NCBI GenBank assembly: GCA_002269645.1
Contig: NIVC01000199.1
Span: 186,001 to 250,000, forward strand
Direction: 5' to 3'
From: Macrostomum lignano
Lineage: Eukaryota
Length of the DNA stretch: 64,000 nucleotides
A program made the translations under genes and the position numbers. Below the pieces are notes generated by a model. The model was not told the origin of the DNA. It was given only the letters and a program-made list of their open reading frames with translations, and searched no databases. Shown here in pieces: positions 4,471 to 24,822 of this stretch (positions are counted from its first letter, which is position 1; each line of letters begins with the position of its first letter).

Positions 4471-4635
4471 CATTGCACTAGATAATAAAATGATTCTTGC
4501 ACTATCTTAGAAGCGGATAATTGCGCTGGAAAAAAAAGAGATTATTGCGCTAGCTGAGACATGGATTATTGCACAACCTGAGAAAGCGATTATTTCATTA
4601 GCGGAGGAAATATTTGCACTAGCTACTTGCTGTCT

Positions 4636-4860
4636 AATGGATGCTTGCTATCTGCAGGATGCTTGCTATCTGCAGGATGCTTGCTATTTGGAGGGATGCT
4701 TACTATTTTGGAGGATGCTTGCTATCTGGGTGGAGGCTTGCTATCTGCAGGATGCTTGCTATCTGCAGGATGCTTGCTATTTGGAGGGATGCTTACTATT
4801 TTGGAGGATGCTTGCTATCTGGGTGGAGGCTTGCTATCTGGGGAATGCTTGCTGTCTTGG
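4636..4860 (+). repeat. 18-bp minisatellite (GATGCTTGCTATCTGCAG)
   Basis: Tandem units; same unit as the large reverse-oriented array at 39090-40550. Confidence 0.93.
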
Positions 4861-5512
4861 GGATGTTTTCTATTTAGGGGGAATGTCTGTGTCTTTGTAA
4901 AATTCAGGTGGAATTTAGGGGGAATCTTTGTGAAAACTATATTTTGTCTTTCTGTTAATTTAAAAAAAGTAAGAGATTCATAGCAAACATCTTTGTTCAT
5001 GACAATTTTACTCGAATAAGGTGATTTATAAAACTGAAGAAGGAATTGGTTCTTAAGAAAATGTGCTTTTTTAATTGTTTTATATAAATATTTTTGCTCC
5101 TTGCTTATTGCGCGCCCCGAAGGGGGGCACTAGATTGCTAGTAGCAATAGCTAAATTCAGATAGTTACAAGTGTAGACAATGATACAATCCAGTGTAGCC
5201 TAAATAAATGAACTTTAACATTGATAATAGCTTAGAAAAAGAGCTAATTGTCTTTAATTCTTTAGTATAGCATATTGGTGAATATCTAGATACGAGTATC
5301 TAGAAATATCATACTTGTTTCATGTCCATGTTGCGCTCCTATTGGCTGAAAGGCTTATCTGTTTGATTGTTCTGAATTAATGTACTGACCCATTTCAGTG
5401 TAAACTTGCTAACCAAGTAAATATAAAAAAAAATTCAGACACCTGCAGCCACAAACTACGCTGTCAAATCATTTTGCTGCATACCGCTTTGTAGCAGTTC
5501 AATTTGTGAAAA

Positions 5513-7483
5513 ATGACGAACTTAATGTCAGTTAGTAATTGGCTAACGGACTCCGCCGTCAATCAACCGCAAAATGTAGTACTAAACAACACATTCGCCA
5601 CATCAGAGAGGGATTCCGATATATTAGACTATGAGATTACGAGCAATGCTGTCATACCAACTGAGGCATTGATACCAATATTACCTACTCCATGCAACTT
5701 AGCAAACAATAGTACGAAAGACTCCTTAGCTGTTGCAATGAAAGCCATAGCTGACACTGAAATGCCTAAGCAGCGAATGCTCATAGCCGCTCAGCTTCGA
5801 GCTTCAACATACTTTGGTACATCTGACGCGCGACAATTGGTACAAACAGGTAAAAGCAAGGTACTGCGGTACTACAACAACAGCACACCTGGTGGCAGAG
5901 CGTCATCAGTGCCGCAGACTCTGGACTTCCGCAATCAGCGATGGGACACGAGTGGAATGCCGGCCTCGATTCCACAACACCTGTGGGACATGAGACGAGA
6001 GGAGAACAGGTGGCAGTCCTTCCACCTGCCAGATGCCAGCTTCACAGCGGCTCACCTGGTGTCCGTGACGGATCTGGCTGCTGACGGATTCTTCTACCTG
6101 CAGGAGTCGGACAGAGTAAAGTGTGCATTCTGCAAGGGTGTGCTCAAGGACTGGGAGGCGGGCGAGCAGGTCCGAGAGGCTCACAGACGCCACTTCTCCA
6201 CCTGTCCGTTCGTGCTGTTCGTCGAGGTCGGCAACGTGCCTCGAGAACACAGAGAGCCAGAAAGAGTCTTGATTTCAGCAAAGATAGTAGAGGCAGTGCA
6301 ATGCTGTGATCAGACTGCAGATGATGCAGCAGTGATGGTGAACGGAGACTGGAGCATGAAGCTGGTCGCTGAGCTATCACCGATGGAGTTCGCTGGACTG
6401 AACGAGTGGGCACTGGCGACACGCGAAACTCGTGGACCGAATGCACGACGCGTTGTGGACGACGAGCTGGTCGCAGTCGACATGATGAAGCGTCCTCAGC
6501 TTCCAGTGTCGAGCGAAGTAGCGAGATCTGCGTGCTCCGAGAGAGCTCTCACGAACCTGTCCGCTCTGCAGCACAGTCTCGAGAGTGATCCATCGAGTGT
6601 GACTGCCAAACACGCACAGTTCGAGACCTACCAAGCGAGGTCGCAGTCTCTGCACTCGGCTCTCGTTCAGCAGCCAGTGTACTTGCTTGCAAAGGCGGGC
6701 TTCTTCTACTCGGAAGCCGAGAGAGCGACCTGCTGCTTCAGCTGCGGACTTTGCATGAGCGAGTGGAGCTGCGACGATGATGTGTGGGTTGAGCACGCCA
6801 GGTGGTCACCTCGGTGTCCTCACGTGTTGTTGGAGCGAGGTAGCGACTTTGTGCAGACAGTGCACCGACTGTCGCCTCCCGTGCAGCACCCGACTTGTGG
6901 CGCCTCTGCTCAGCGTCACGCTGCATTGGTACAGACGGACTCAACTGCATCAGCAGGTGCTGCGACTGTCGACGGGTCCGCCGCCACTACTGCAGTCCGC
7001 AGCAGTCGCGCAGACGAGGCTCTCGCAGTCACACCTGGAGTCGAGTTCAGAGTCGAGGCCAGAGACATCAAGGCGAGAGCCGACCTGCCCGTTGTGAGAC
7101 TGCTCACTCAACTCGGATTTTCCGCTCTGCAAGTGAGACTGTTTACAGAGCTGCATCTCAGACAGCGAGGCGATGACTTTGCCTCATCGGAGCTGTTCCT
7201 CGACTTCATGCTCACCGAGAGCCGCCGCATGCGCAAGCAGTCGCAGGACCCGGAGGCGTTCTTCGAGAGCAGGATGTCTCAGATTCGAGAGTCTCTGAAC
7301 CAACAGCCGAGACCCCGAGACACAACCGACTGGAAGACGTGCAAGGTGTGCATGGACAAGGAGGTGAACATCATGCTGCTGGACTGTGGTCACGTGGCCT
7401 GCTGCTCAGTGTGCGCCAAGTCGCTGAAGACGTGCCCCATCTGCAGGGCCTTCATTCGCGGCTCCCTATTTTTTCGTGAGTGA
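5513..7483 (+). CDS. inhibitor of apoptosis protein (IAP/BIRC family; BIR-BIR-UBA-like-RING), intronless, copy 1, 656 aa
   Basis: Two canonical BIR motifs C-x2-C-x16-H-x6-C (CAFC..H..C and CFSC..H..C); UBA-like segment LPVVRLLTQLGFS; C-terminal C3HC4 RING CKVC..CGH..CSVC..CPIC; true ATG start. Confidence 0.95.
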   Translation: MTNLMSVSNWLTDSAVNQPQNVVLNNTFATSERDSDILDYEITSNAVIPTEALIPILPTPCNLANNSTKDSLAVAMKAIADTEMPKQRMLIAAQLRASTYFGTSDARQLVQTGKSKVLRYYNNSTPGGRASSVPQTLDFRNQRWDTSGMPASIPQHLWDMRREENRWQSFHLPDASFTAAHLVSVTDLAADGFFYLQESDRVKCAFCKGVLKDWEAGEQVREAHRRHFSTCPFVLFVEVGNVPREHREPERVLISAKIVEAVQCCDQTADDAAVMVNGDWSMKLVAELSPMEFAGLNEWALATRETRGPNARRVVDDELVAVDMMKRPQLPVSSEVARSACSERALTNLSALQHSLESDPSSVTAKHAQFETYQARSQSLHSALVQQPVYLLAKAGFFYSEAERATCCFSCGLCMSEWSCDDDVWVEHARWSPRCPHVLLERGSDFVQTVHRLSPPVQHPTCGASAQRHAALVQTDSTASAGAATVDGSAATTAVRSSRADEALAVTPGVEFRVEARDIKARADLPVVRLLTQLGFSALQVRLFTELHLRQRGDDFASSELFLDFMLTESRRMRKQSQDPEAFFESRMSQIRESLNQQPRPRDTTDWKTCKVCMDKEVNIMLLDCGHVACCSVCAKSLKTCPICRAFIRGSLFFRE

Positions 7484-8769
7484 AGGCTGTTTTGTTTTTT
7501 AGCACTAGGTAAAACGTTGCACGAATTGTTTTCCATAGAAACAATAACTGTTGGATTTTTAGCGCATAATGGGGCGGAATCAAAGAGAAGAATAATTAGT
7601 GAGTTTTGTTTCTGGATCCTTACTTGCAGTTTTTTGTAGGCAAGTTATCTTCAAGTTGAGACCTTGTCACAATTTATTTTAAGAAGTCTTTGTTTTCATA
7701 ATCGCTTAGTCGCTTAATGACAATTATACTACTTTTTCAGTTTGGTTTTTTTCTTGCAAATAGATTCGTCACTTCAGATAGCAACAACACCATATTTTTA
7801 ATTTATCGCATCTATTTATAGCATTTGTAACATTAATACTTACATGAGTTGGTTTTCACCTTTCTGTGCAATAATATTTCTGCGTAATGTATAATACTAT
7901 AATGCACTTGTAGTTTACTATTATTTAGAGTTTGTCATATGTACGTAGGATAAGCGTTTACGAGTATTTAGACGTCACTGTGTGCACTAATTTAGTAGCA
8001 TATTCAGTGCCTCATCTGTCGATGCAGCACCCGCACTTAATCAGTAACTTCTACACCATTTCACCTTTAATTTCATTCAAGCTCCAATTCACGTTGCACA
8101 ATCGGAAGCTCGACTTTGACACTTCGAGAGCAGGAAAATTACATGAAAATCTACATTAATTTTAGACAAACTCCTTTTAATATCGACAGCAAGCACAACT
8201 TTGTATGGGGAAGAAAGTCTATATGGTGTTGCACTGCCAAAACTCCTTTTTATTTTTGTCAAACTCCAATTCATATCGAAAAAAATTTGACGCAACTTCT
8301 ATAAACTGATCAAAGTTCGTCAAAGTACGTCCAACATCGTTAATCTACACCCACTTTCGTCGGGTTCCATTCCATGTCTTTTAAAGCCGTTTATTTTCGG
8401 AGCAAAAAGGTAGCATGGCTAGAAGTGTCGAAGTTAAGCCATGGCAACAATACGTGCCATTGTACGTGTGCATTCATACCCATGCGTAATCTGATGTGTT
8501 CATACTGAATATTGCCCTTTTTACAGTGTACTGCAACGCAAGCATTGAAGAATGAACGTCATTATATGTTTCCAGCCTAATACATCATTTTTAACCTGTT
8601 GCATATGCAGCTTATTTTGCTGGCCTTGCATCAAACGTTGCAGACCGATATTGTTAATTTTTTGTATCTGCTATTGCTTTAAAGTTCTTACTGGCTTTTA
8701 TTACCAAATAGGTGTTTCTTATTTAAACTAAATGATTTCCTTTACAGTAGTGTGAATTTCTGCTCACAC

Positions 8770-9329
8770 TAGGACCTGCGACGCCGCCGCGGGCTTGCCT
8801 GGGCTGCCTTTCGTTCTGTGAGGGCAGTCCTGCAGTCCGAGGCCCTACCGGACCGCCAGAGGGCGGCGCTGTTCCAGGCGGTAATCGAGACCGTCCTGCT
8901 GTACAACGCCGAGACCTGGACGCTGACGGACTCACTCGAACAGCAAGTCGATGCGGCGCACGCTGGTCTGCTGCGCGCCGCCTTCAACATCGGCGTCGAG
9001 CGAGTCACCAACGCGGCACTCTATCGCCGCGCTGGCCTGCCACGTCCAAGTGATCTACTGCGCCGTCGGCGACTCCAGCTCGCAGGCCATCTCATCCGCG
9101 CCGAGTCGTACTGCCCACAGCCGGTGCAGGAGGTGCTGCTGCTCACGCTGCAGGCACCCTACCGGCGAGGTCAAGCGCGAACTCGGCGTTATGTCGACTG
9201 TCTGCTGGCTGACGCCGGCGCCCCGGACACTGCCGGTGGCGCGGCCTTTGTTCGCGCCCAAGCCATGAAGCGCGCCCTGTGACGCTGACTTTTACCATCA
9301 TGACAGCGTATTTTGTTGTTTGTTGTTGT
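8770..9329 (+). mobile_element. 5'-truncated RTE-type non-LTR retrotransposon with target-site duplication
   Basis: ORF2 C-terminal motif VIETVLLYNAETWTLT..RRRRLQLAGHLIR; (TTG)n tail at ~9315-9330; TGCTCACAC duplicated at 8761-8769 and 9330-9338. Confidence 0.85.
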
Positions 9330-9559
9330 TGCTCACACGAACTGCTTTAAAGTCGATTTCATTCCTAAATTTATTGAAAATTGAGAAGCGTTTGGAGCAA
9401 ATGAGGCCTAATACTCAATTTACCACTTAATCAAGGACTTGACCAAGTGACTGTCGATATAGCACAAATAAGGCTGGTTTACTTCACACTTTTGCCTGAA
9501 TATTCGCTGGTCAAATATTGCTCAAATCAATTTAAAATCAGTGTGACTTGACTATGTTG

Positions 9560-10250
9560 GCCTTTAGTCAAATCACAAGTACAAGTATAACTATAGCCCA
9601 ATTAGTCGGCCATCAAATCACAGGTACAATTGTTGCCGTACCCCAATTAGTCAGCCATCAAATCACAGGTACAATTGTTGCTGTACCCCAATTAGTCGGC
9701 CATCAAATCACAGGTACAATTGTTGCTGTACCCCAATTAGTCAGCCGTAAAATCACACGTACAATTGTTGCTGTACCCCAATTAGTCAGCCGTCAAATCA
9801 CAGGTACAATTGTTGCTGTACCCCAATTAGTCAGCCATCAAATCACAGTTACAATTGTTGCTGTACCCTAATTAGTCAGCCATCAAATCACAGGTACAAT
9901 TGTTGCTGTACCCCAATTAGTCAGCCATCAAATCACACGTACAATTGTTGCTGTACCCCAATTAGTCAGCCGTCAAATCACAGGTACAATTGTTGCTGTA
10001 CCCCAATTAGTCAGCCATCAAATCACAGGTACAATTGTTGCTGTACCCTAATTAGTCAGCCATCAAATCACAGGTACAATTGTTGCTGTACCCTAATTAG
10101 TCAGCCGTCAAATCACGGTTACAATTGTTGCTGTACCCTAATTAGTCAGCCGTCAAATCACACGTACAAGTAACTGTACCCCAATTAGTAGGCCATAAAA
10201 TCACACGTACAAGTAACTATACTCCAATTAGTCAGCCATAAAATCGCAGG
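9560..10250. repeat. 45-bp minisatellite (TTGTTGCTGTACCCCAATTAGTCAGCCATCAAATCACAGGTACAA), ~15 units
   Basis: Directly visible tandem array with degenerate edges. Confidence 0.95.
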
Positions 10251-10832
10251 TAAAATTGACAGTCTAGACCCAAGTATTCAGCCATTATATCACAGGTACA
10301 AGTGGTATTATATATACCACTGGAATACAATAAAGAAAATTGAAGGCATATACTAAAGATTTTTTCTGCTGCAAAACCAGCTGCTTTTGTGGTTTATCCT
10401 GCAAAGCCCCGTTTGCGATTTACTCTGCAAGCACGCGGAATTCAACAGCATGGGAGAGCAGTTTGTTACCAGACTGTACAGAAATCCAATGTAAATCAAA
10501 TCACTGTACATGTAGATCTCTGTGATTACGCAGTAACGCCTGTTCTGTAATTTTATAAATCGTGGATGAGACGCCCAGTTTTTACGGTTTGATTGGCTGG
10601 GTTGATGGGTAGTATCCGATTTCGAACTGACTTGCCTATTGATTAGGAAATTATTACAGTAAATCAAATACATGTAACAGTATTTGCTCTATATTTATTG
10701 CAATATAAGAGTTCACTCTCTTCTCTAATCTCTCCTCTTTTCTCACTTCTCTCTCATCTCTCCTCTCTGCTCTCTCTGTGCGACCCCATATTCACAAGCT
10801 TCTTAATGTCTTCGCGTGCTAATAACATATTT

Positions 10833-10960
10833 AACAAGCTGTTGAAACCCGCGGATTTTGAACCCGCTGAATTCCAATCCTTGGAACTGTTTTTGCATAT
10901 ATTTTAAATCTGAAGTCATATTTAAACAAACTTGTTAGGATAGAGGTAAAATGAAGTAAA
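10833..10960 (+). repeat. dispersed repeat (second copy ~58577-58710), each followed by a CT-rich tract
   Basis: ACAAGCTGTTGAAACCCGCGGATTTT..TTTTTGCAT..AAATCTGA..AACTTGTTA shared between the two loci. Confidence 0.75.
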
Positions 10961-11049
10961 TTAAGGATAATTGAGGCGGGCATTGATCTCATCAGCTGGG
11001 GTGTTTCAAACTCTGGCTTCTGGCTTCTGCCTCTCCATCACTAAGGTCC

Positions 11050-11815
11050 CTTAAAACTTCTCTGTTTTCTTCTCTCTCTTCTCTCCTCCTCTCGTGTCTC
11101 ACCTCTTCTCTCCTCCTCTCGTGTCTCATCTCTTCTCTCCTTGTTCTTCTCTCCTTTCTTTTCTCATCTATCATCTACATGAATTATTTCGTCCTCCTCC
11201 TTCGTCTCTTCCTTCCTCTCTCTCTGCTCTCATCTCTCCTCTGCTCTCTCATCTCCTCTCTGCTCTCATCTATTTTCTCTGCTTTCTTATCTCTCCTCTC
11301 TGCTCTTATCTCTGCTCTCTTATTTCTCCTCTCTGCTCTCTTATCTCTTATCTCTCCTCCTTCCTCTCTCAGCTCTTATCTCTTCTCCTCTCTCAGTGGC
11401 GCAGCCAGGGGGCGGGGGCCTGCCTCCTCTTGAGATGTACCCCCCCGAACTTCTGGAGAAAAAATCCCCCCCCCCGAATTTTTCGGCTTATCAGAACACT
11501 CCCTCTTGGTGCGGAATGTGCCCACCGAAATAAATTCCTGGCTTCGCCACTGTCCTCTATACTCTCTCCCCTCTCCTCTCTCTTCTCTTCTCTCATTCCT
11601 CTCTCTTCCTATTTTCTTCCCTCTTCTCTCCCCCGATCTCTCTTCTCTACTCTCTCCCTTCTTCTTTTTTCTCTTGTCTCTTCTCTCCTCTTTTTTCTCT
11701 TCGTCTCTGCTCTCTCATCTCTCATCTCTACTCTCTCCTCTCTTCTCTTCTCTCTACTCTCTCTAGTCTCTAGTCTTTCTCTTCTCTCCCCTCTTTCCCC
11801 TTTTCTTTCCTATCG
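11050..11815. repeat. low-complexity CT-rich tract
   Basis: Near-pure (TC/TCC/TCT)n; produces spurious Ser/Leu-rich ORFs. Confidence 0.9.
11394..11552. mobile_element. 159-bp MITE, hAT-like
   Basis: 16-bp TIR CAGTGGCGCAGCCAGG / CCTGGCTTCGCCACTG (1 mismatch); 8-bp flanking duplication TCCTCTCT / TCCTCTAT (weak evidence inside a CT tract). Confidence 0.75.
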
Positions 11816-12928
11816 ACTATCCGGCCTGGTGGAGGAATTCAGGACCGGCAGGCTCGTAGGCATCCGGTGGGCAGCTAACAAGATCGGCAGAGCCTGCGTG
11901 CCAGCTAGCATTAGCAAGTACTTCAGATTTCTCATGGCTGCAGACTTTCTGCTCTTGGTTTCAATTTTCAATCTCAAGCTTCAAAACTCAATGCAGAGTC
12001 TCCCCTTTGCCTCATAATGCAGACCATAATTTATACTCGCGCTTATCAATGGGTCCATAATCTTCGAGCGAATAATAGTTGAGTCCAGTGTGACGGCTTT
12101 ACCCGACCACACCCTCTGCCGAACGCAGCCCCACCATTGGCCGCATTGGTCTTCAGTGCAGAACTTCACAACTATTACCAATATCTCACCAGTATAGCAA
12201 ACTTTTACTATTGTTTAATTACATCACCGCTTACTATTCCTGTTGAGATTATCTCTCCTATAATATGATAATTTTACATTTATACTCCGTCACAAAATGT
12301 CTAACCTCAATAAAAAATGGGGAACAATATAGGGTCTAGAAGTCCGCAAGTAGGGTTTAGCAATCCGCTAATATAGGTCACATATAATAATAGGAACGCC
12401 AAAGCGAGGTGAGGTTAAGGAGTGCCATAAGTGAAAGTGAAAAGCTAAGGCGCATAAGTGAAACGATTAGAGATCAGTCAGTAGCGAGGACATAACTCTG
12501 ATAAGAATTTAACAGCCACCCTCCAATCCAGATACCAGGCCAAGCGAGTTGATATCAACGTCAGTCGAGTTACCGAGCAGAGCGAGTTACTGCTGACAGA
12601 CGAGGTCAACAGACGCACATGGAATTTGGCCGACTCGTGAAGGAGAAGCTGCATCTCATCCAACACTGCATGATGCCGCTTGGATCGGTGGTCTGATGTA
12701 CACAAAAGATCAGAAAATGGACTCCGGGCTCTCTCGAAGCACCCTCGCTATTTACTAGAACTTTTCTGTGGAATTCCATTATTTAGTCCCACAAATACTT
12801 GAAGTTTCATTCATTTGTGCTAAAGGCACGGAAGAACTGATTAGTAACCATGCAAGCTCGATGAATAAAGGAAGCTTGATTTTCCCGACCTGTGGGATTC
12901 ACCGGCCTAAAGGATAGGGCTGGGGGCG

Positions 12929-13445
12929 TCGACAAGGAGACAGAGCTGTCGACAAGGAGACAGGGGCGCCGACAAGGAGACAGGGGCTCCGACAAGGAGA
13001 CAGCGGCGCCGAGAAGGAGACAGGGGCGCCGAGAAGGAGACAGGGGCGCCGACAAGGAGACAGGGGCTCCGACAAGGAGACAGGGGCGCCGAGAAGGAGA
13101 CAGGGGCGCCGACAAGGAGACAGGGGCTCCGACAAGGAGACAGGGGCGCCGAGAAGGAGACAGGGGCGCCGACAAGGAGACAGGGGCTCCGACAAGGAAA
13201 CAGCGGCGCCGACAAGGAGACAGGGCTGTCGACAAGGAGACAGGGACGCCGACAAGGAGACAGGGCTGTCGACAAGGAGACAGGGCTGTCGACAAGGAGA
13301 CAGGGGAGATAGGGTCGCCGGCCAAGAGACAGGGCACCGGCCAAGAGACAGGGGCGCCGGCCAATTGAGACAGGGGCGCCGGCCAAGAGACAGGGGCGCC
13401 GGCCAATTGAGACAGGGGCGCCGGCCAAGAGACAGGGGCGCCCGT
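12929..13445. repeat. GC-rich 20-bp minisatellite (GACAAGGAGACAGGGGCGCC) grading into a variant unit (GGCCAAGAGACAGGGGCGCC)
   Basis: Directly visible tandem array. Confidence 0.95.
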
Positions 13446-14463
13446 CAAGACACTAAAGAGGGCTGCTGTAGCCGCTCCAATTAAAATTCCCGCGTACGCC
13501 ACCGGATTAAACAACATGAATCATCAAGTGTCGCATTTTAAGCTCCGTTGCAAAAATTGTATATTAAAATACAGTTATAGATGTAATAAAATATCAGAAG
13601 GTAATCTTCATCTGTCAGTTTATCAGCACTGACTTTCATAATCTGTCAGTTTATCAGCACTGACTCCCAAGTGTAGAAATAAATTACATAATATTACTGT
13701 AAGGCGTCAAAATGGAAACATGCAATGCAATATAATATATAATATCAACACAATACGAGTATCCGAGGTAAAGATCTTTAAAAGTTTTAAGGTTTGCATG
13801 TGATTTATTTTATACGACGCATTTTTTGGCTGTCTTGTTTTAGTTTTCAATTTTCCATCCCTAGCCAATCACAGGGAACTCCGCCTGCAGCTGATCGATC
13901 CTGATCGATTCATCCTATATCAAAAAGGTAGAATTAAAAATAAAAAAATGCTGTAAGAAAGTTCAATTCTGAAGTACATCAAGATTTCATTACATTATGC
14001 TCGTAGACTGCGGGGTACTTCATTTTCAGTTAGAAGCACAGATTCCCTGCATGAATTGCTTTCACCAATAAATTCATTTGAATCTTCAAATAAAAATACG
14101 AGTATCCAAGACCGAAAATGCCATTTAACACGCAGCTTGGACTCTCAATAAACATGGACTGCACCTTTAGTGCGTAACGCAAGAGAAGAACTGCAAATTA
14201 CAAGCATTTCCAACGATAGAATTTGAAACTTCTACTGCTTAAAAGCAAAACGTAAATTTTTTTTCTAGAAGCTAACTGCCTTGTACAGTAACGTACAGTA
14301 CACATGTATATCTACTAATCAACTATTTCAGAAAAGTACAATTTTATAAAGAATACAACAAGCACTTGTGTTGTCATTACTGAAAAAAACAAAAGGCGTT
14401 TTGACGGAGCCATTGCGACCCATCACAAAGTAGAATTCACAGTCCAACTCTTGTATGAGTTCA

Positions 14464-16451
14464 TCAGTCCCGCAGGAAAAGTACACCCCGAATGAAGGCT
14501 CTGCAGATGGGGCACGTCTTCAGCGACTTGGCGCACACTGAGCAGCAGGCCACGTGACCACAGTCCAGCAGCATGATGTTCACCTCCTTGTCCATGCACA
14601 CCTTGCACGTCTTCCAGTCGGTTGTGTCTCGGGTCTCGGCTGTTGGTTCAGAGACTCCCGAATCTGAGACATCCTGCTCTCGAAGAACGCCTCCGGGTCC
14701 TGCGACTGCTTGCGCATGCGGCGGCTCTCGGTGAGCATGAAGTCGAGGAACAGCTCCGATGTGGTAAAATCATCGCCTCGCTGTCTGAGATGCAGCTCTG
14801 TGAACAGTCTCACTTGCAGGGCGGAGAATCCGAGTTGAGTGAGCAGTCTCACAACGGGCAGGTCGGCTCTCGCTTTGATGTCTCTGGCCTCGACTCTGAA
14901 CTCGACTCCAGGTGTGACTGCGAGAGCCTCGTCTGCGCGACTGCTGCGGACTGCAGTAATGGCAGCGGACCCGTCGACAGCCGCAGCACCAGCTGATGCA
15001 GTTGATTCCGTCTGTACCAATGCAGTGTGATGCTGAGCAGAGGCGCCACAAGTCGGGTGCTGCACGGGAGGCGACAGTCGGTGCACTGCCTGTACAAAGT
15101 CGCTACCTCGCTCCAACAACACGTGAGGACACCGAGGTGACCACCTGGCGTGCTCAACCCACACATCATCGTCGCAGCTCCACTCGCTCATGCGAAGTCC
15201 GCAGCTGAAGCAGCAGGTCGCTCTCTCGGCTTCCGAGTAGAAGAAGCCCGCCTTTGCAAGCAAGTACACTGGCTGCTGAACGAGAGCCGAGTGCAGAGAC
15301 TGCGACCTCGCTTGGTAGGTCTCGAACTGTGCGTGTTTGGCAGTCACACTCGATGGATCACTCTCCAGACTGTGCTGTAGAGCGGACAGGTTCGTGAGAG
15401 CTCTCTCGGAGCACGCAGATCTCGCTACCTCACTCGACACTGGAAGCTGAGGACCCTTCATCATGTCGAAAGCAACCAGCTTATCGTCCACAACGCGTTC
15501 TTCATTCGTTCCAATAGTTGCGCGTGTCGCCAGCGCCCACTCGTTCAGTCCAGCGAACTCCATCGGTGGTAGCTCAGCGACCAGATTCATGCTCCAGTCT
15601 CCGTTCACCATCACTGCTGCATCATCTGCAGTCTGATCACTGCACTGCACTGCCTCTACCAGCTTTGCTGAACTCAAGACTCTTTTTGGCTCTCTGTGAT
15701 CTCGAGGCACGTTGCCGACCTCGACGAACAGCACGAACGGACAGGTGGAGAAGTGGCGTCTGTGAGCCTCTCGGACCTGCTCGCCCGCCTCCCAATCCTT
15801 GAGCACACCCTTGCAGAATGCACACTTTACTCTGTCCGACTCCTGCAGGTAGAAGAATCCGTCAGCAGCCAGATCCGTCACTGACACCAGGTGAGCCGCT
15901 GTGAAGCTGGCATCTGGCAGGTGGAAGGACTGCCACCTGTTCTCCTCTCGTCTCATGTCCCACAGGTGTTGTGGAATCGAGGCCGGCATTCCACTCGTGT
16001 CCCATTGCTGATTGCGGAAGTCCAGAGTCTGCGGCACGGAGGACGCTCTGCCACCAGGTGTGCTGTTGTTGTAGTACCGCAGCACCTTGCTCTTGCCTGT
16101 TTGGTTTCGAATCGCTGCATTGAGGTGTTCATGAAATCTTCTGCTACCCTTTAGTGCGTAATCAACTACAATTTTTTGAAGCTCAAGTAAGAGATCCGGC
16201 TTTTTGTTTCCTTCAACGGCTTGTTTGGCGATTGTGTACGTTATTGTCTTTCTGTGTTCGTCAACCACTTGCAGGCTGGTTATTTCTTGGAAGAACTGAA
16301 AAATGGTTTCTCGTCTGCTCTCTGATGCGGCGTTTCTTTGATTTGAAGTCAGATTTTGAAGCCAGCGCTCGGTGTTCAGAATGGAATTCTGTGATCTCCA
16401 TTGAGCCAGTGTAGTTGATGGCCTTCGAAAGTGTTCTGCTGCATGAGAGGT
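14464..16451 (-). pseudogene. IAP copy 2; 1-bp deletion just before the RING and no in-frame ATG in its unique 5' part (pseudogene, assembly error or spliced 5' end)
   Basis: Core near-identical to copies 1 and 3; GACCCGAGA versus GACCCCGAGA at ~14632 shifts the RING into another frame (stop at 14464-14466). The frame is open back to 16451; the ORF-track start at 16268 is GTG. Confidence 0.85.
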
Positions 16452-17789
16452 TTATTTTGTGGAAATAATTTAATTTAAAAGCTGATCGACAGTGGCAAAA
16501 GTTTTTTAAACGTTTCAATAAAGTAAAAATTGAATGAAATTACCTGCGTTTCGGCGTCGATGCCTTTGCTGTCCGACGTTAGCAATTATAACAAGTGACA
16601 GACTGTTGCTTTAAATATCGATATTAAACCGCTTTTGGCTTGCTTATTTCGACTTTCTGTGATATGAATATTGTCGCCTGTCCATACCCCGGTATACTCG
16701 TATGTACGTGTATATATACTATTTTAAGCTGGAGCTTAAAACGTACCCCGCAATAATGCACTAGCTAAAAATAGCTATTACAAACTATCTAAATATACTA
16801 AATCTTATATTCTATTTATGGAACGAACCAGTTTATTTCCAGTTGCAAATTAACAATAGCTGTTGCGTTGCAATGAGCAGTGAAAGATGGTCAATTATGA
16901 AACGTATTTATTAGTGACGCATAGAGGCTTTTTTAGTTCGTTCTTTTACTTTTTTAGCTTCTTACGAAATATGATAACAATTATAATAGTCATTGATGCA
17001 GAAAACATTGATGCAACTATAATTACTCAACAAAGCTGCTCCCTACCAGACCTGTAAAATTTTTACATTTCACAGCCATTTTTAAAGAAAAAATTCACGA
17101 TGCCTCTTTTCAGCTTGTCTTATAGTTGGAGAACTTTTTGTTTGTTGGTTAGGGATAAAAATGATGGATAATCGCAAGGGGATGCCTGGGCTATAAGCTA
17201 GATGTGACACCACCTCCCAACCCCAGCTATTGCAGCTCCTGAGCTTTCAAGTTCTCCAATTTAAGTTACTTTATGTACAAATTTCATCACTTGGCTGTTT
17301 TAAATAGAGGAAAAAATAGTAAGGGCTTGTCAAGTGTCAGCTTCGAGCGTATTAATTTTGGTTTGTTTTACTTGTTTTCCGTTCTGAGAAACCAACCCTG
17401 GACCGGCCGTTTCCGTTTCCGCCGAGACAGGTGCGCATTGCGTCCTAATGTGAATCATATAATACCAAAATGTATTACCTAAATGTCTCTTGCATCTTGC
17501 GTTAAACCCACCGGTGTAGATGCCAATGAGGCTGGCGACGTTGATAGATATGCAGTATTTTGTTTATCTAGGTGTTTGGTTTATTTGCATTTTTTGTACC
17601 ACCCGCAGGCTTCAAATCAAGCCAGAATGCCGACGCAGCAGAGCAGAAGCCAAGCGAATAAATAAGGTCACCAACCCTTTCCACCCCCTCCAGCAAGACA
17701 GGTCTGGTAGGTGCCCCCGTCAGATAAAACAGGTTACAGAACCGGTAATAACCGGCCCCGAAATTAAAGTCACTTGTATTTTGTTTAGC

Positions 17790-17889
17790 ATATTTTATTA
17801 TATCTTTAGCAGGTTAAATTTCTCTAATCGATCACATAGATTGATAGATAGATAGATAGACACAGACAGACCATTTTTAGTATATAGGA
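17790..17889 (-). mobile_element. Helitron-type 5' terminus
   Basis: Reverse complement reads A|TCCTATATACTAAAAATGGTCTGTC.. plus (CTAT)n, matching 2576-2640 and 25171-25210. Confidence 0.6.
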
Positions 17890-18234
17890 TTTCTGCTGAA
17901 TGAGTTTAAAAGCAATATACACTCAGCAATATGTTAAAGTTTCCACCCCAAAACTAGTGGTCAACTTTCCCCAGATCTCAGCCCCAAATGACGCAATTCA
18001 CACCACGTCCGCAGGCTCGTATGGGCTGATTTCGCAATCAAGCTGATATGAATAAAAATAAACTGATATTAGTGTATTATCAATGATAATATTAAGAATT
18101 AATTCCATCCAATTCATTAATTAATTTAATATTCAACTGATGAAAAATTCAGTCCACCACTGAATGACCACTGGCTTCGGGGTGGAAACTTTAGCATGTT
18201 GCTGAGTGTACATGTACTCTCGTAGGGGGCTTGA

Positions 18235-19265
18235 CTGGGTGGCTGCGGATCGCTCTTCCGATGTCAACCGGCGTCGCGTGGGCGACGTCAACCGGAGAGG
18301 CGGCTCAGCGTGCTTGGCTACGCCGACGAATTCGCCCTGCTGTTCTTAAGTGTCGAGGGCGCTCAGTGACAACTGGACAAGCTAGTTGCTGTTGTGGCGA
18401 GTGTCAGCCACTTGATCAACACGCAGAAAACCGTCGTGCTCTCGTGCTCCGCGTGCCGGATGACATCGAGGCTGCGATTTTGTGCCGAAGCACTGTTGGA
18501 CAGGCGGCAGAGCTTCCGCGTTGTCAGCAGTTCGTCTACCTCGGCGGTCTGGTTTCCGTCGTCCGCGAAGATTTGCCGCGTCGCCGCGGGCTTGCCTGGG
18601 CTGCCTTTCGTTCTGTGAGGGCAGTCCTGCAGTACCTGACCGCCAGAGGGCGGCGTTGTTTTAGGCGGTGATCGAGACCGTCCTGTTATACAACGCCGAG
18701 AACTGGACGCTGACGGAGTCGATCGAGCAGCAAGTTGACGCGGCGCACGCTTGCCTGCTGCGTGCCGCCTTCAAGATCGGCTACAAGCGAGTGACCAACG
18801 CGGCTTTGTATCGCCGCGCCAGTTTATTCCGTCCAAGCGACCTGTTGCGCCGCCGGCGACTCCAGCTGTCAGGCCACATCCGCGCCGAGTCGTACTGCGC
18901 ACAGCCGGTGCAGGAAATGAGAAACACCGTGCTGATGGGCGAGGACAGCCCCCCGAGACGGCCGGTAGGACGGGCCATGGGTGACTGTAATCTGCTACTC
19001 GGGTGAGTGTGGCCGGAAAAATTGGCCCGAGGGTTGACCTCGAGACACAGCCCCCGCGTGAAGGGTGTATCGTTGGCATGCAGCCGGTGCAGGAGGTGCT
19101 GCTGATAACGCTGCAGGCACCCTACCGATGGGGACAGGTGCGCGCTCTGCCTGCTTGCTGACGCCGGCGCCCCGGATTCGGCCGGCGTTTGTGGTGTTCG
19201 TTCGCGACCTGGCCTTGAGACGCGCCTTGAGACGCTAACAGAGTATTTTGTGGTCTTTGTTGTCA
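18235..19265 (+). mobile_element. degraded RTE-type LINE 3' fragment containing a 165-bp insertion
   Basis: LGYADE (YADD-like RT motif), IETVLLYNAENWTLT, several frameshifts, degenerate TTG tail; homologous to 8770-9329. Confidence 0.85.
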
Positions 19266-19284
19266 TTCATATAGACATATAATA

Positions 19285-19545
19285 ATAATGGAGGGCGGTT
19301 ATTGGCCCGAACGCAACGACACCGTCTCACAACCAGCGCTGAAGCAATTCAGCCCATTCCACTGACTCCTGAGCATACAAGTGCGCTAATACTGTACGCA
19401 GACACGCACTCATAGACACGCTCACACAGGGTGTACAGCCGCTCTGACTTTCTAATCGCCAGACATGTACACTCACTGTGCCTCGGAGTTGAGCCTCGTG
19501 GCGCGAGAGTCAGATGCATTTACCACTGAGCTGATCTGCACCTAA
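19285..19545 (-). mobile_element. tRNA-derived SINE, family B
   Basis: On - strand: A-box-like CAGCTCAGTGG and B-box-like GGCTCAACTCC; body GTGTACATG..CTGTACAC..GCTCAGG..GGAATGGG shared with 35150-35495 and 62760-63115; (ATT)n tail. Confidence 0.7.
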
Positions 19546-19547
19546 AC

Positions 19548-19643
19548 CGATAATAAATAATAATAATTGATTACACCTGCCCCGAAATCGAACCCCCGAC
19601 CTTCAAGTCGTGAGTCCGACGCTAACCATTAGGCCCCCATCCA
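19548..19643 (-). mobile_element. short tRNA-derived SINE head with (TTA)n tail
   Basis: Reverse complement GGGGCCTAATGGTTAGCGTCGGAC..TTGAAGGTCGGGGGTTCGATTTC, resembling the head of the SINEs at 37902 and 53542. Confidence 0.6.
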
Positions 19644-19778
19644 GAGAGGTATACTAAGAAAAAAATACTTAAAAAAAGAAAACAACGTTAGCAGACAAAC
19701 AAACCATTTCTAATAACTTGTTCCGGTTGTACCAACTAAACCTGCTCGTAAAGATGAAATAATGACAGATAACGCTGA

Positions 19779-20223
19779 TCTGTCCGAATCCAATGCTGTT
19801 CTGTCCGAATCCTATGCAGATCTGTCCGAATCCAATGCAGATCTGTCCGAATCCAATGCAGATCTGTCCGAATCCAATGCAGATCTGTCCGAATCCAATG
19901 CAGATCTGTCCGAATCCAATGCAGATCTGGCCGAATCCAATGTCCGAATCCAGTGCAGATCTGTCCGAATCCAATGTCCGAATCCAGTGCAGATCTGTCC
20001 GAATCCAATGCAGATCTGTCCGAATCCAATGCAGATCTGTCCGAATCCAATGCAGATCTGTCCGAATCCAATGCAGATCTGTCCGAATCCAATGCAGATC
20101 TGTCCGAATCCAATGCAGATCTGTCCGAATCCAATGCAGATCTGTCCGAATCCAATGCAGATCTGGCCGAATCCAATGCAGATCTGTCCGAATCCAATGC
20201 AGATCTGTCCGAATCCAATGCAG
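19779..20223 (+). repeat. 21-bp minisatellite (TGCAGATCTGTCCGAATCCAA)
   Basis: Tandem array; same unit as 26008-26350 (reverse). Confidence 0.96.
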
Positions 20224-20515
20224 ATCGGCGGCAATCGAGTAACCGAGTGCCAGCTCGAAGTCTTCCTGCGCCCCTGCATCGTCAACGGAGTCCGCTGCCC
20301 GCCGGATGGCTCGATGAGCTTTGAAAATATAGCGAATTACGAGCTACATGGAGAGCACCAAGATGTTCTCCAGAGCACTCGCTGGCGAGCTGCCCAGGGA
20401 ATGTGACTGCGAAGACACCTGCGAGACTTGCAACCGTCGCTGCATGTACGCCATGATGAAGGTGCTCGTTCTCGAGTACAACGTCCCGGTCAGAATTCAT
20501 GTTTACGAGTCTTAA
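20224..20515 (+). pseudogene. frameshifted paralog of exon 2 of the secreted Cys-rich protein gene at 25575-26423
   Basis: GGNRVTECQLEVFLRPCIVNGVRCPPDGS, then a net +7 nt shift at ~20320-20347, then MESTKMFSRALAGELPRECDCEDTCETCNRRCMYAMMKVLVLEYNVPV; no signal-peptide exon found upstream. Confidence 0.8.
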
Positions 20516-21564
20516 ATGTGTTCACAAATAACTCACAGCTTGTTAGTTCATCGATCATTGAGTTCAACCGCTGAAGCGTTTTGTGGTACTTGCTTGGTAG
20601 TTGCCATAAAGAGAGGATCGAGAAAAGCGGGAAAACGCGGTACGCCGTCTAAAAAAGAAATACCTTCATTGCCTAAAATAGCCTATGTGAAAGCAGTACT
20701 CCGAGAAATAATCATGTGACAAGCGTCAAGCCAAGATTATTTATAGCTTTACAGCCCTAGCTTTAATTCAGGTTTTTATAGTTCATGCAAACAGCGAGTG
20801 TCGATCTTCCAGCGCACACTGTTTATCTTGTGCAGAGCTCCCCCGGCTTTTCCATGACTAGTGTACTGTACTGCATTGTACTCGCGTGATAAAAATAACT
20901 GGCGGCTTTCCCATGAGTAAGTGTACGTTAATACGGCAGTGTAATTCACGAGATAAAAATAGCGCTGAAACTCAGGAAATTTCTTGAAGGTTCCATCAGA
21001 TTGCTCCGATTTAAACATATATAAATAACGAGCAAAAACTGGACTGTATTAAAGAATTATAATTCTAGCAGAATTACTAGATTTACAATCCGCTGGATTT
21101 AACGGAAAGTCGCCAACTCTATTTTATCTCATCGACTAAATCGTTACCTTGTAGTGGTAAGTGCTTAAAGCGTGTCTTATTCTTTGCTAAGATCATATTT
21201 ATCCGCTGTGAGGTCCCTAGATAGGCCACTCATTCAATGCTTTAGATGCCATAAACTCTGATGTGAGCTGGATTTATGGTCGAGACTAACTGAAATTTGT
21301 TATTTTTTCAGTTTTAGAGCCGCGGAATGTGTCCAGAACCGTTTGAAGGACCACAGCGGTTAAGCCAAGTAATTTTTTGACTAAGCATTGTGAACCATAC
21401 TGTTTTTAAGCTATACTTGGAACTGCATAAATTAGAGTAAAAATTTATTTTTACCGGCTGGCATTTATTGAGCCACTACTTTCCAAAACGTGCAGTTTTA
21501 CAGCGTCGTAACATCATACCACTGAAATTTCAAAACGAAAACCCAAATTGTTAGTACACTTCAT

Positions 21565-21800
21565 ATACCCAAATTTACACATACCCGAAATTTCACATAC
21601 CCAAATTTTCACATACCCAAATTTCACATACCCAAATTTTCACATACCCAAATTTTCACATACCCAAATTTTCACATACCCAAATTTTCACATACCCAAA
21701 TTTTCACATACCCAAATTTTCACATACCCAAATTTTCACATACCCAAATTTTCACATACCCAAATTTTCACATACCCGAAATTTCACATAGCAAAAGTTC
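21565..21800. repeat. 16-bp minisatellite (TTTTCACATACCCAAA)
   Basis: Directly visible tandem array. Confidence 0.95.
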
Positions 21801-22782
21801 ACATACTTAGAAGTTTACGTCGAATTGCACAATGTCGAAATAACCTTTAGAGATAAGACTATAAACTAGAATTTTAAAATAGGTAATTTCCCTAATTTCA
21901 CACTTTGCTCTTTCCGTAATTTCTATACTCACTTATCTGGATACGAAGGTCCTGTGTGATAACCTGATATTGTTAGGATAGTCTCCAAATCTGCTGGAAA
22001 TGTTATTTTTCAGCTGATATTATGGGAATTATAAAACTTCTGCCCAACCTTAATTAAATATTGAATACTAGGTCCGGGAGCTCAGCTAGGATGTGCAATT
22101 TTCTGTTTAAGAAATGAAACAAAATGGATGACTGCTGGTAATAAGTGTCCTAAGTGTAAGTGTGGTCTTCTAAGTGTAAATTCGACGTTGTGAAATTTTA
22201 GAGTTGTGAAACCAACTGTCGCTGTATTATAACAAAACGTAAAAATCAAAGATGGAGTAATTTTTAGAAAGCCAATTTCCAGGAGAAATACACTGCGGAG
22301 ATTGGAAAAATTTATTTTTTCCATAAAAAAATCAATAAATGCATTTGATATGGGTCAGTGAAGATTACCCCTTCTTCAATTGCACAGCAACAATATAAAA
22401 CACAATATTCACCTGTTTCCATGCTAAATTAAAGGAATGGTAATCTCAACTGGCCTGAATCAAATGCAAATATTGATATTGTAACGAAAAAATGATTTTT
22501 CGTGGAAATCGGCCTCCTAAAAACCTACCAGATTTATGAGTTTTACGTCCTGGTATACTACAGTGTTCGTTTTGTAAAACTTCGGAGTTGAAAGTAAAGT
22601 TCACATTTCGCTGATATAAGATACTTTCCTTAGATTTATAACAGTCTAGCACTCTCTAATGGCAAATATTTAGGCCTCTAGTTATCTTTTGCCATAAAGA
22701 ACGCCCATTACGAGCGTAAATAAGGATCTGTAGATAAACAAAGTTACATGAATTTCTAATCTACTAATGTTTTAGCCAAAAA

Positions 22783-24822
22783 ATGCACTCGACAAGACAA
22801 CAAAGTTACTTCCCTCAAGCATCCGCCGGTGTGGCAAAGAAGTTTCGAGCGGCCAACGGAACAGGCAGCTCTGTGGAAAATATTATGCATTTAATTTCCA
22901 GTCTCACACAACCTGCAAGCGGCTGCAACTTCTATGTAACTTTAGACGACAAAACACTTCAGCGGTTGAACTCAATGGTCGATGAGGTCACAAGCTGCAC
23001 TCGAGACCGACTTCCGCTAGACAACATGGAACTAATTCAGGAACACCAAAAAATGAGCTTCACAGGTGAAATGTTTCAAAAGTTGCTTCAACATGCAGCC
23101 ACAGAAATTTCAAAGTTCCTGATGATGAATGTTAGACAGAATACTCAGGCTTCAGAAATGAATTTACGGGCAGCGCAACAAGGAAATAAGGCTCAAACAG
23201 GTAAGAGCAAGGTGCTGCGGTACTACAACAACAGCACACCTGGTGGCAGAGCGTCATCCGTGCCGCAGACTCTGGACTTCCGCAATCAGCGATGGGACAC
23301 GAGTGGAATGCCGGCCTCGATTCCACAACACCTGTGGGACATGAGACGAGAGGAGAACAGGTGGCAGTCCTTCCACCTGCCGGATGCCAGCTTCACAGCG
23401 GCTCACCTGGTGTCAGTGACGGATCTGGCTGCTGACGGATTCTTCTACCTGCAGGAGTCGGACAGAGTAAAGTGTGCATTCTGCAAGGGTGTGCTCAAGG
23501 ACTGGGAGGCGGGCGAGCAGGTCCGAGAGGCTCACAGACGCCACTTCTCCACCTGTCCGTTCGTGCTGTTCGTCGAGGTCGGCAACGTGCCTCGAGACCA
23601 CAGAGAGCCGGAAGGAGTCTCGAGGTCAGCAAAGCTGGTAGAGGCAGTGCAGTGCAGTGATCCGACTGCAGATGATGCAGCAGTGATGGTGAACGGAGAC
23701 TGGAGCATGAATCTGGTCGCTGAGCTACCACCGATGGAGTTCGCTGGACTGAACGAGTGGGCGCTGGCGACACGCGCAACTTTTGGAACGAATGCAGAAC
23801 GCGATGTGGACAATAAGCTGGTCGCTTTCGACATGATGAAGCGTCCTCAGCTTCCAGTGTCGAGCGAAGTAGCGAGATCTGCGTGCTCCGAGAGAGCTCT
23901 CACGAACCTGTCTGCTCTGCAGCACAGTGTCGAGAGTGATCCATCGAGTGTGACTGCCAAACACACACAGTTCGAGACCTACCAAGCGAGGTCGCAGTCT
24001 CTGCACTCGGCTCTCGTTCAGCAGCCAGTGTACTTGCTTGCAAAGGCGGGCTTCTTCTACTCGGAAGCCGAGAGAGCGACCTGCTGCTTCAGCTGCGGAC
24101 TTTGCATGAGCGAGTGGAGCTGCGACGATGATGTGTGGGTTGAGCACGCCAGGTGGTCACCTCGGTGTCCTCACGTGTTGTTGGAGCGAGGTAGCGACTT
24201 TGTACAGGCGGTGCATCGACTGTCGCCTCCCGTGCAGCACCCGACTTGTGGCGCCTCAGCTCAGCGTCACACTGCATTGGTACAGACGGACTCAACTGCA
24301 TCAGCTGGTGTTGCGACTGTCGACGGGTCCGCAGTCCACAGCAGTCGCGCAGACGAGGCTCTCGCAGTCACTCCTGGAGTCGAGTTCAGAGTTGAGGCCA
24401 GAGACATCAAGGCGAGAGCCGACCTGCCCGTTGTGAGACTGCTCACTCAGCTCGGATTCTCCGCTCTGCAAGTGAGACTGTTCACAGAGCTGCATCTCAG
24501 ACAGCGAGGCGATGACTTTGCCACATCGGAGCTGTTCCTCGACTTCATGCTCACCGAGAGCCGCCGCATGCGCAAGCAGTCGCAGGACCCGGAGACGTTC
24601 TTCGAGAGCAGGATGTCTCAGATTCGAGAGTCTCTGAACCAACAGCCGAGACCCCGAGACACAACCGACTGGAAGACGTGCAAGGTGTGCATGGACAAGG
24701 AGGTGAACATCATACTGCTGGACTGTGGTCACGTGGCCTGCTGCTCAGTGTGCGCCAAGTCGCTGAAGACGTGCCCCATCTGCAGAGCCTTCATTCGGGG
24801 TGTACTTTTTCTGCGGGACTGA
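22783..24822 (+). CDS. inhibitor of apoptosis protein (BIR-BIR-UBA-like-RING), intronless, copy 3, 679 aa
   Basis: Same BIR, UBA-like and RING motifs as copy 1; intact ORF from ATG; unique 137-codon N-terminus. Confidence 0.95.
   Translation: MHSTRQQSYFPQASAGVAKKFRAANGTGSSVENIMHLISSLTQPASGCNFYVTLDDKTLQRLNSMVDEVTSCTRDRLPLDNMELIQEHQKMSFTGEMFQKLLQHAATEISKFLMMNVRQNTQASEMNLRAAQQGNKAQTGKSKVLRYYNNSTPGGRASSVPQTLDFRNQRWDTSGMPASIPQHLWDMRREENRWQSFHLPDASFTAAHLVSVTDLAADGFFYLQESDRVKCAFCKGVLKDWEAGEQVREAHRRHFSTCPFVLFVEVGNVPRDHREPEGVSRSAKLVEAVQCSDPTADDAAVMVNGDWSMNLVAELPPMEFAGLNEWALATRATFGTNAERDVDNKLVAFDMMKRPQLPVSSEVARSACSERALTNLSALQHSVESDPSSVTAKHTQFETYQARSQSLHSALVQQPVYLLAKAGFFYSEAERATCCFSCGLCMSEWSCDDDVWVEHARWSPRCPHVLLERGSDFVQAVHRLSPPVQHPTCGASAQRHTALVQTDSTASAGVATVDGSAVHSSRADEALAVTPGVEFRVEARDIKARADLPVVRLLTQLGFSALQVRLFTELHLRQRGDDFATSELFLDFMLTESRRMRKQSQDPETFFESRMSQIRESLNQQPRPRDTTDWKTCKVCMDKEVNIILLDCGHVACCSVCAKSLKTCPICRAFIRGVLFLRD

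Follow-up and report, generated by a model that had tools for sequence, protein, structure and literature searches.

A tandem array of predicted RING-type IAP genes in Macrostomum lignano, in which diverged N-terminal extensions adjoin a near-constant core within a single open reading frame

A 64,000-nucleotide stretch of the genome of the flatworm Macrostomum lignano (positions 186,001 to 250,000, forward strand, of contig NIVC01000199.1 in assembly GCA_002269645.1; hereafter the window) includes several members of a tandem array of intronless genes predicted to encode RING-type inhibitor of apoptosis (IAP) proteins, of which at least seven copies, in both orientations, lie on this contig. 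Each gene of the array is one continuous open reading frame (ORF), made up of a variable N-terminal region of ~104-139 codons (here termed the head), a region of ~535 codons that is nearly the same in all copies (the core), and a tail of 6 codons. Copies 1, 2 and 3 and the 3' part of a fourth lie within the window (Table 1), and three further copies (L006a, on the reverse strand, L006b and L006c) precede copy 1 in the part of the same contig upstream of the window (locus L006).

The family was enlarged through cluster and contig look-ups of related loci, giving at least 10 copies with at least seven types of head (L numbers denote loci and P numbers denote proteins). Part of the array recurs in duplicated form at locus L005, L001 and L002 are additional loci, with L008 and L007 as their respective duplicated counterparts, and L003 (contig NIVC01003532.1 of the same assembly) is 99.7-100% identical to positions 12144-20730 of the window. 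The head types are A1 (copy 1), A2 (P0036/L005b and L006c), B (copy 2), C (copy 3), D (L001), E (L002), F (P0028/L006b and L005a) and G (L006a), A1 and A2 being counted as one. In a protein search the closest proteins to copy 3 are from M. lignano itself (89-98% identity), the next being BIRC7/XIAP-like proteins of molluscs, at 27-29%.

The core encodes two BIR domains, recognised by Pfam PF00653 as two stretches per protein (E = 1e-26 to 6e-30), with zinc signatures that are legible in the translations (CAFC...H......C and CFSC...H......C) and matches to BIR domains in the PDB at E values down to 1e-12, and, in copies 1 and 3, a C3HC4 RING (PF13920, E = 2e-13 to 4e-13). The top PDB matches are to cIAP1, XIAP, ML-IAP and DIAP1, the top stretch being the cIAP1 RING (overall E = 1.3e-26). 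On these matches the proteins are RING-type IAPs, DIAP1/XIAP-like and predicted to be E3 ligases; the ratio of non-synonymous to synonymous substitution rates (dN/dS) in the core, 0.2-0.4, i.e. purifying selection, indicates only that they are functional proteins, the E3 activity being a prediction. A preliminary description of this DNA, made from the sequence alone, gave the domain order as BIR-BIR-UBA-RING. The two BIRs and the RING are upheld by the Pfam and PDB matches, but the UBA is not, there being no Pfam match at E <= 10 on the segment between BIR2 and the RING; the PDB sequence matches are confined to the BIRs and the RING, and neither a CARD nor a UBA is detectable by sequence using Pfam or the PDB. 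In an AlphaFold2 prediction for copy 3, this segment has three short helices at per-residue confidence (pLDDT) values of 47-65, too poor for use. Overall, the architecture is that of RING-IAPs with two BIRs (DIAP1 type; XIAP, cIAP1/2, BIRC7), with C-x2-C-x16-H-x6-C BIRs, a C-terminal C3HC4 RING and a short hydrophobic tail. By contrast with the DIAP1-type RING-IAPs, the M. lignano proteins have an extension of ~180 residues before BIR1 that is without a detectable relative, and a long inter-BIR linker.

The borders of the near-constant region are sharp. By BLASTN against the window, positions 5843-7461 of copy 1 match copy 2 (16103-14486, reverse strand) with 96.5% identity and copy 3 (23194-24800) with 96.0%, and the fragment at 30746-31114 matches just the last ~370 nt of the copy 1 core; upstream of the junction between head and core, the same search gave no alignment between copy 1 and the rest of the window. 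When copies are compared in register in 30-nt bins, the last 300 nt ahead of the junction have identities of 0.10-0.47, i.e. around the random level of about 27%, as against 0.90-1.00 from the heptamer CAAACAG onwards, confirming the abrupt onset of near-identity at this heptamer that had been noticed in three copies. The heptamer itself is variable at three positions (CAGACAG in L001, L005a and L006b, CTGACAG in L006a, CAGACTG in L002), all versions of it encoding Q/L-T-G. The 3' border of the block lies ~18 nt ahead of the stop codon, so that the final six codons vary by copy, the variable tails being SLFFRE, VLFLRD, VVFVQM, SVFIKM and TVLIKI. The location of this border inside the coding sequence argues against transcript ends defining the block.

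In copy 2 a 1-nt deletion in a run of C residues at ~14630 takes the RING out of frame. L003 has CCCC at this site and encodes an intact RING (protein P0003); copy 2 may be a decaying or RING-less allele, or else its defects may be homopolymer errors. The GenBank protein P0035, which is from a different contig, ends truncated in the same way. The fourth copy is a truncated pseudogene. Nothing IAP-like lies upstream of the fragment, which adjoins a reverse-transcriptase fragment (31459-31977, reverse strand).

The heads have the character of open, apparently translated sequence. Upstream of the junction, 111, 116 and 142 codons are open in the IAP frame in copies 1, 2 and 3, compared with 2-19 in the other two frames, and when the 600 nt around each copy are shuffled, runs of at least 110 open codons arise with P = 0.0007-0.0008. 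The same applies to all seven head types, which are open for 110-188 codons in the IAP frame only (shuffle P 1e-4 to 1.3e-3 for each). The preliminary description had regarded such stop-free runs as improbable by chance, had copies 1 and 3 beginning at an ATG, and had noted that the DNA upstream of the core is AT-richer; all three points hold, the ATGs being at 5513 and 22783 and the GC content being 0.43-0.44 in the heads of copies 1-3 versus 0.58 in the core (0.33 in flanking non-coding DNA). The ATG lies 1-5 codons past an upstream stop in copies 1 and 3, L001 and L005b, the distance being one codon in copy 1, L001 and L005b and five in copy 3. At third codon positions, the GC content (GC3) of the heads is 0.29-0.44, compared with 0.63-0.68 for the core and 0.51-0.63 for the window's other genes; for copies 1-3 the values are 0.40-0.44 (head) and 0.64-0.68 (core). 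The heads of copy 1 and P0036 differ at proportions of 0.32 of non-synonymous (pN) and 0.56 of synonymous sites (pS), with dN 0.41 and a dN/dS of ~0.4 at long range. Isolated heads contain no known domain, the Pfam matches being noise only (GMP_PDE_delta at 0.0028, below its cut-off), and the AlphaFold2 prediction for copy 3, made with a shallow 10-sequence family alignment, has a mean pLDDT of 36.8 and shows low-confidence helices only, again too poor for use.

The heads had initially been taken to be three unrelated N-termini, a view that is not sustained by profile comparisons. With a hidden Markov model (HMM) built by leaving out one head type at a time, each type scores above its own 2000 shuffles (p 0.0005-0.003; Fisher combined p 5e-14), and reversed head sequences, used as a control, score ~0. 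An alignment of eight heads has co-linear motifs (N-W; E-[IV]-T-S; LL..A..E[MI].KQR.L[IV]), and the lengths of the heads are similar across types. With five heads, 6/10 pairs have a best local alignment that keeps its register relative to the junction, i.e. is co-linear with it (p = 0.003), and the summed global score has p = 0.018; single pairwise comparisons are weak (p = 0.03-0.9 per pair). The weakness of the signal with five heads accounts for why no similarity had been seen before. Intermediate pairs also exist. The P0036 head is homologous to that of copy 1, ~40 residues on the junction side being nearly identical and the similarity decaying toward the N terminus; at the DNA level, homology reaches 143-211 nt upstream of the junction between copy 1 and L005b/L006c, and 78-101 nt between L006a and L005a/L006b. 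Beyond these alignable pairs, the DNA of the heads is unalignable.

An exhaustive search of 1.84 billion representative proteins with the head profile found no relative outside the family, the matches being the family's own representative P0006 and three tandem-repeat artefacts; a word-indexed search of a 5.8-billion database with the eight-head alignment gave none at E <= 0.01, the profile being too weak for a database of that size. The heads are thus not detectably borrowed from other genes, and on the profile evidence they are an orphan, lineage-specific N-terminal extension, the members of which are diverged homologues of one another. Of the modular system proposed earlier, the variable and apparently coding head that runs, with no intron between, into a near-constant core is upheld; the unrelated modules are not.

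The homology of the heads bears directly on a cassette model, in which one BIR-BIR-RING unit was inserted repeatedly in frame, by transposition, retroposition or exon shuffling, into unrelated coding sequences. The 5' border that is identical in all copies, the intronless state of the family, whereas BIR1 is interrupted by an intron in the distant paralogue P0009, and the presence of reverse-transcriptase fragments nearby would all fit such a model. Nevertheless it is extremely improbable, since the heads are mutually homologous, co-linear, of similar length and linked by intermediate pairs, have no relatives outside the family, and since the ends of the block lack the poly(A) tract, target-site duplications or spliced-leader remnant that would be expected of a retrogene; further, the 3' border is inside the coding sequence and the cores are mosaics, not clean copies. 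The suggestion in the preliminary description of repeated insertion into new coding contexts is accordingly set aside, both on the homology of the heads and on their lack of relatives among the 1.84 billion proteins.

The paralogue P0009 (locus L004; 36% identity) is single-copy and has a GC3 of 0.76. Upstream of its annotated ATG (L004:5332-6000) there are 223 open in-frame codons, with a GC content of 0.39 and an ATG ~192 codons upstream. Its annotated start may be too short. The possibility that this open run is a related head was considered and rejected, no similarity being found (p = 0.79).

The contrast between heads and cores at synonymous sites is marked. Among the cores of copies 1, 2 (as the L003 version), 3 and L001, synonymous divergence (dS) is 0.06-0.10 with dN/dS 0.19-0.35, rising to a dS of 0.25-0.29 to the divergent copy L002. 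For the heads, dS is ~1.0 overall between copy 1 and P0036, the only pair for which a codon alignment is feasible, with a pS of 0.84 (saturated) in the distal 62 codons and a dS of 0.25 in the proximal 45. The cores of copy 1 and P0036 differ by ~3-4%, each being 96-97% identical to the copy 3 core, and are 98.5% identical to one another over the first 200 nt. By this measure the age of the heads exceeds that of the cores to which they are joined by a factor of ten or more.

It could be argued that this contrast arose by recent duplication of whole genes followed by explosive divergence of the heads under positive selection, with the core held back by constraint and without conversion. The core dN/dS of 0.2-0.4 does imply constraint, and the heads do change fast at the protein level. 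However, the head pS of 0.56-0.84 versus a core dS of 0.08 is seen in the same gene pair, and the flanks past the ORF are unalignable; selection acting on amino acids cannot be the cause of an age contrast that extends to synonymous sites and to the flanks. The excess core divergence between duplicated loci described below, involving variants shared among paralogues, likewise needs exchange of sequence, and this explanation is considered very unlikely.

Within the core there are several signs of such exchange. Across eight cores at ~4% divergence, all four gametes are seen at 55% of the pairs of informative sites, which at such low divergence requires exchange; as an example of the resulting mosaic, L006c has copy 2-like and copy 3-like patches that are not present in its duplicated counterpart L005b. 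In four pairs of duplicated loci that have a head in common, divergence is ~0.7-1.4% in the head and flanks but 2.4-3% in the core, i.e. 2-4 times more. Thus, L005b and L006c differ by ~0.8% in the flanks and 2.4% in the core, L005a/L006b being likewise a pair with a core excess, and in the pairs with D- and E-type heads pS is 0.013 (head) vs 0.054 (core) and 0.022 (head) vs 0.052 (core), respectively. That a constrained coding core is more diverged than its own flanks is a signature of imported variation. At 28 of the 39 core differences between L005b and L006c both states are seen in other paralogues, and the 11 unique differences correspond to 0.67%, the same as the flank rate; overall, shared-state differences were 28/39 and 18/39 in the duplicated-locus comparisons.

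A block that is much younger than its flanks and carries reticulate variation, as found here, is the pattern by which concerted evolution is recognised. Of the two origins that the preliminary description had offered for the constant core, it is homogenisation of the core only that agrees with the age contrast, the four-gamete mosaic and the excess core divergence of the duplicated loci. Two variants of conversion were also considered. GC-biased gene conversion is not invoked as the source of the GC-rich core, P0009 being equally GC3-rich (other window genes 0.51-0.63), and cDNA-mediated conversion from trans-spliced mRNA, proposed for the 5' border, is a poor fit because the 3' border is inside the coding sequence.

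The apparent constancy of the core might in principle be produced if long reads from a repeated gene had been assembled into collapsed or chimeric copies, the M. lignano genome being highly redundant and repeat-rich (PMC5730564) and copy 2 differing from L003 by a homopolymer indel. The probability of this is close to negligible, because the cores differ mutually at ~4% of sites in copy-specific patterns, and the same junctions and heads are found again on several contigs of the public assembly, which is taken as independent.

A different reading of the junction is that its AG is a splice acceptor for a spliced leader (SL) or an upstream exon, such that mRNAs would begin at GTAAGAGC with a spliced leader or upstream exon, the heads would be outron or intron, and the protein would start from MPASIPQ; in a milder version both isoforms exist. 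Consistent with this proposal, ACAG/G (the slash marking the potential splice site) is present in 9 of the 10 copies, the junction reading ACAG/GTAAG with an AG followed by G, and SL trans-splicing affects ~30% of the genes of M. lignano (PMC8629364). Annotation is divided on this point. Four older models (P0001, P0004, P0005 and P0031) start at KSKVL, the first full codon past CAG/GT, P0003 and P0035 are annotated from MPASIPQ, the first core methionine, the annotated start of P0009 is at the aligned position, and P0028 joins an F-type head to the copy 1 core across 28 kb. By contrast, five GenBank models (P0002, P0032, P0036, P0006 and P0034) have head and core in a single exon, the RNA-seq-guided, trans-splice-aware M. 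lignano annotation (PMC5730564) having kept the heads attached in these models.

The sequence at and around the junction also speaks against an acceptor. Non-coding heads would not remain open for 110-188 codons in seven types, nor would they give pN < pS or conserved protein motifs; unlike the reported M. lignano trans-acceptor motif, [T/C]TNCAG (PMC8629364), the junction has AAACAG, and the sequence upstream of it behaves as coding. The heptamer variants are synonymous or conservative at the Q, T and G codons. In particular, L002 has lost the AG through a synonymous change (ACA>ACT) that keeps the Q-T-G codons, and the methionine of MPAS is isoleucine in its protein (P0006), yet its head is still open. 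The ATG within the spliced leader itself would not be in the reading frame of the core, and four copies have GC instead of the GT of CAG/GT, a point against use of the site as a donor. A search of the window for the spliced-leader sequence (SL primer CGGTCTCTTACTGCGAAGACTCAATTTATTGCATG) gave no match. On balance, use of the junction as an acceptor in place of translated heads is regarded as unlikely.

The model P0028 (BOX15_Mlig029966g1, L006:10001-40404) is an oddity. It combines the head of L006b with a core matching at 100% identity that of copy 1, 28 kb downstream, so that one whole copy between the two is skipped. It is most simply a chimera resulting from multi-mapping, although splicing between paralogues at the junction would look alike.

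The explanation that we prefer, with a rough probability of 0.75, is ectopic gene conversion that is confined to the core and halts at heterology borders on both sides. In this proposal the heads, which are old paralogous sequences saturated at synonymous sites and evolving fast under weak constraint, would be held open by translation from the start ATG, and short-tract ectopic conversion would repeatedly homogenise the cores among members of the array and between duplicated arrays. Because tracts would need homology on both sides, they would not enter the diverged heads or the tail and 3' flank, and each event would re-sharpen the borders, at CAAACAG on the 5' side and ~18 nt before the stop on the 3' side. 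We infer that heterology is what fixes the border. Three observations fit heterology-limited tracts, i.e. that surviving homology between heads (copy 1 vs A2; F vs G) displaces the identity step upstream or softens it, that the 3' border is in the ORF and not at a transcript end, and that the heptamer varies at three positions while keeping Q/L-T-G.

Several points weigh against this explanation, or against the coding heads on which it builds. The border coincides exactly across all head types, including that of the older L002, for which heterology provides an argument and not a demonstration. A PHI-type clustering test for recombination was borderline (p = 0.05), as is expected with short tracts and pervasive exchange. 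The head of L006c, one of the two A2 copies, has only 52 open codons, that of copy 2 has no in-frame ATG, the sole ATG nearby (16444-16442) being one base out of frame, and the composition of the heads is closer to that of non-coding DNA than to that of other genes in the window. Recent changes in the heads between duplicated loci have a dN/dS of ~0.85 (3 synonymous, 9 non-synonymous), compatible with near-neutrality. The four older models that start at KSKVL count here also, and we infer translation of the heads from the DNA. With gene conversion of the core as the preferred explanation, the most economical reading of the heads is that translation would start at the head ATG, with stops selected against and little other constraint.

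The heads might conceivably contribute to specificity or regulation, although this is unsupported. In its fuller form, the idea would be that the heads are specificity or localisation modules kept distinct by selection, while conversion maintains one optimised BIR-BIR-RING ligase, optionally with an SL-derived headless isoform from MPASIPQ; this seems doubtful. Were it so, the family may be an E3 family with diversified adaptors, with a logic like that of immune-type receptor families.

The surroundings of the array are repeat-rich, and minisatellites yield spurious ORFs of considerable length in every frame; the repeat at 4626-4882 recurs as its reverse complement in the 18-bp array at 39092-40550, and a 21-bp minisatellite family lies on both sides of copy 3. 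C-terminal fragments of reverse transcriptase (motif LLYNAETWTLT), 84-85% identical to one another, lie at 8771-9290, 18579-19239 and 31459-31977; their orientation and distance relative to the nearby IAP copies are inconsistent, and they are outside the homogenised block. Of the remaining genes, one encodes an apparently intact carotenoid oxygenase, and a series of exon-like ORFs on the forward strand is probably one large multi-exon gene (Table 1).

Table 1. Features of the window; positions are counted from its first nucleotide.
Feature	Position	Strand	Description
Copy 1 head, type A1	5513-5842	+	110 codons from ATG; ATG one codon past an in-frame stop; GC 0.43
Copy 1 core	5843-7483	+	From CAAACAG; QTGKSK..., BIR1, BIR2, RING; homogenised to ~7461; tail SLFFRE and stop copy-specific
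Copy 2 head, type B	16104-16451	-	116 open codons, bounded by TAA 16454-16452; no in-frame ATG
Copy 2 core	14464-16103	-	ORF as listed stops at 14580; frame shifted before RING
Copy 3 head, type C	22783-23193	+	137 codons from ATG inside 142 open codons
Copy 3 core	23194-24822	+	BIR1, BIR2, RING; tail VLFLRD
Fourth copy, 3' fragment only	30746-31114	+	Final ~120 core codons, stop, ~25 nt of shared 3' flank
Junction heptamer CAAACAG, copy 1	5843-5849	+	Codons Q, T and first base of G
Junction heptamer, equivalent in copy 2	16103-16097	-	Codons Q, T and first base of G
Junction heptamer, equivalent in copy 3	23194-23200	+	Codons Q, T and first base of G
Minisatellite	3243-4485		24 bp
Minisatellites	4638-4882 and 39092-40550		18/93 bp
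Minisatellite	9568-10301		45 bp
Minisatellite	12923-13442		20 bp
Minisatellites	19777-20226 and 26015-26355		21/50 bp
Minisatellite	21560-21806		16 bp
Carotenoid oxygenase gene	54953-56560	-	Intronless, 535 aa; Pfam RPE65, E = 2.6e-105; apparently intact
Exon-like long ORFs	36624-51171	+	208, 189, 318 and 276 aa; sole Pfam match a sub-threshold DUF642

The array thus illustrates neatly a process that is already known, and not a new modular system. Textbook cases of partial concerted evolution include the human fetal globin pair and the red and green opsin genes. As in partial concerted evolution generally, the converted block here is younger than its flanks and mosaic, with excess divergence of shared variants between arrays; it differs from the textbook cases in that both borders are within one uninterrupted ORF, and in that the border is common to at least seven head types. 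The M. lignano genes provide an unusually clean natural instance of partial concerted evolution within a single exon, synonymous sites being saturated in the first 110-140 codons and differing by ~8% in the remaining ~540, and the array lends itself to studies of the limits that heterology sets on conversion tracts. There are practical consequences: read mapping, RNA interference and in situ probes directed to the core would hit every paralogue, the heads alone being copy-specific, and one or more of the GenBank models (P0028 at least) combine parts of different paralogues.

With respect to the IAP family, the closest parallel is with the expansions in bivalve molluscs (PMC7831173, PMC8917759; survey in PMC13159474), which also comprise recent tandem, partly intronless paralogues. 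By contrast, reports on the mollusc expansions stress changes in domain architecture, whereas in M. lignano the set of domains is constant and the N-terminal extension alone varies. The 2026 survey, which covers 312 species, reports loss of RING-IAPs in Platyhelminthes (PMC13159474); Macrostomum is absent from its main text, as are the terms 'gene conversion' and 'concerted', and the flatworms found named there are S. mansoni and E. granulosus. The present results imply that a basal free-living flatworm has an expanded RING-IAP family, so that the reported loss, if it holds for parasitic flatworms, would not be phylum-wide.

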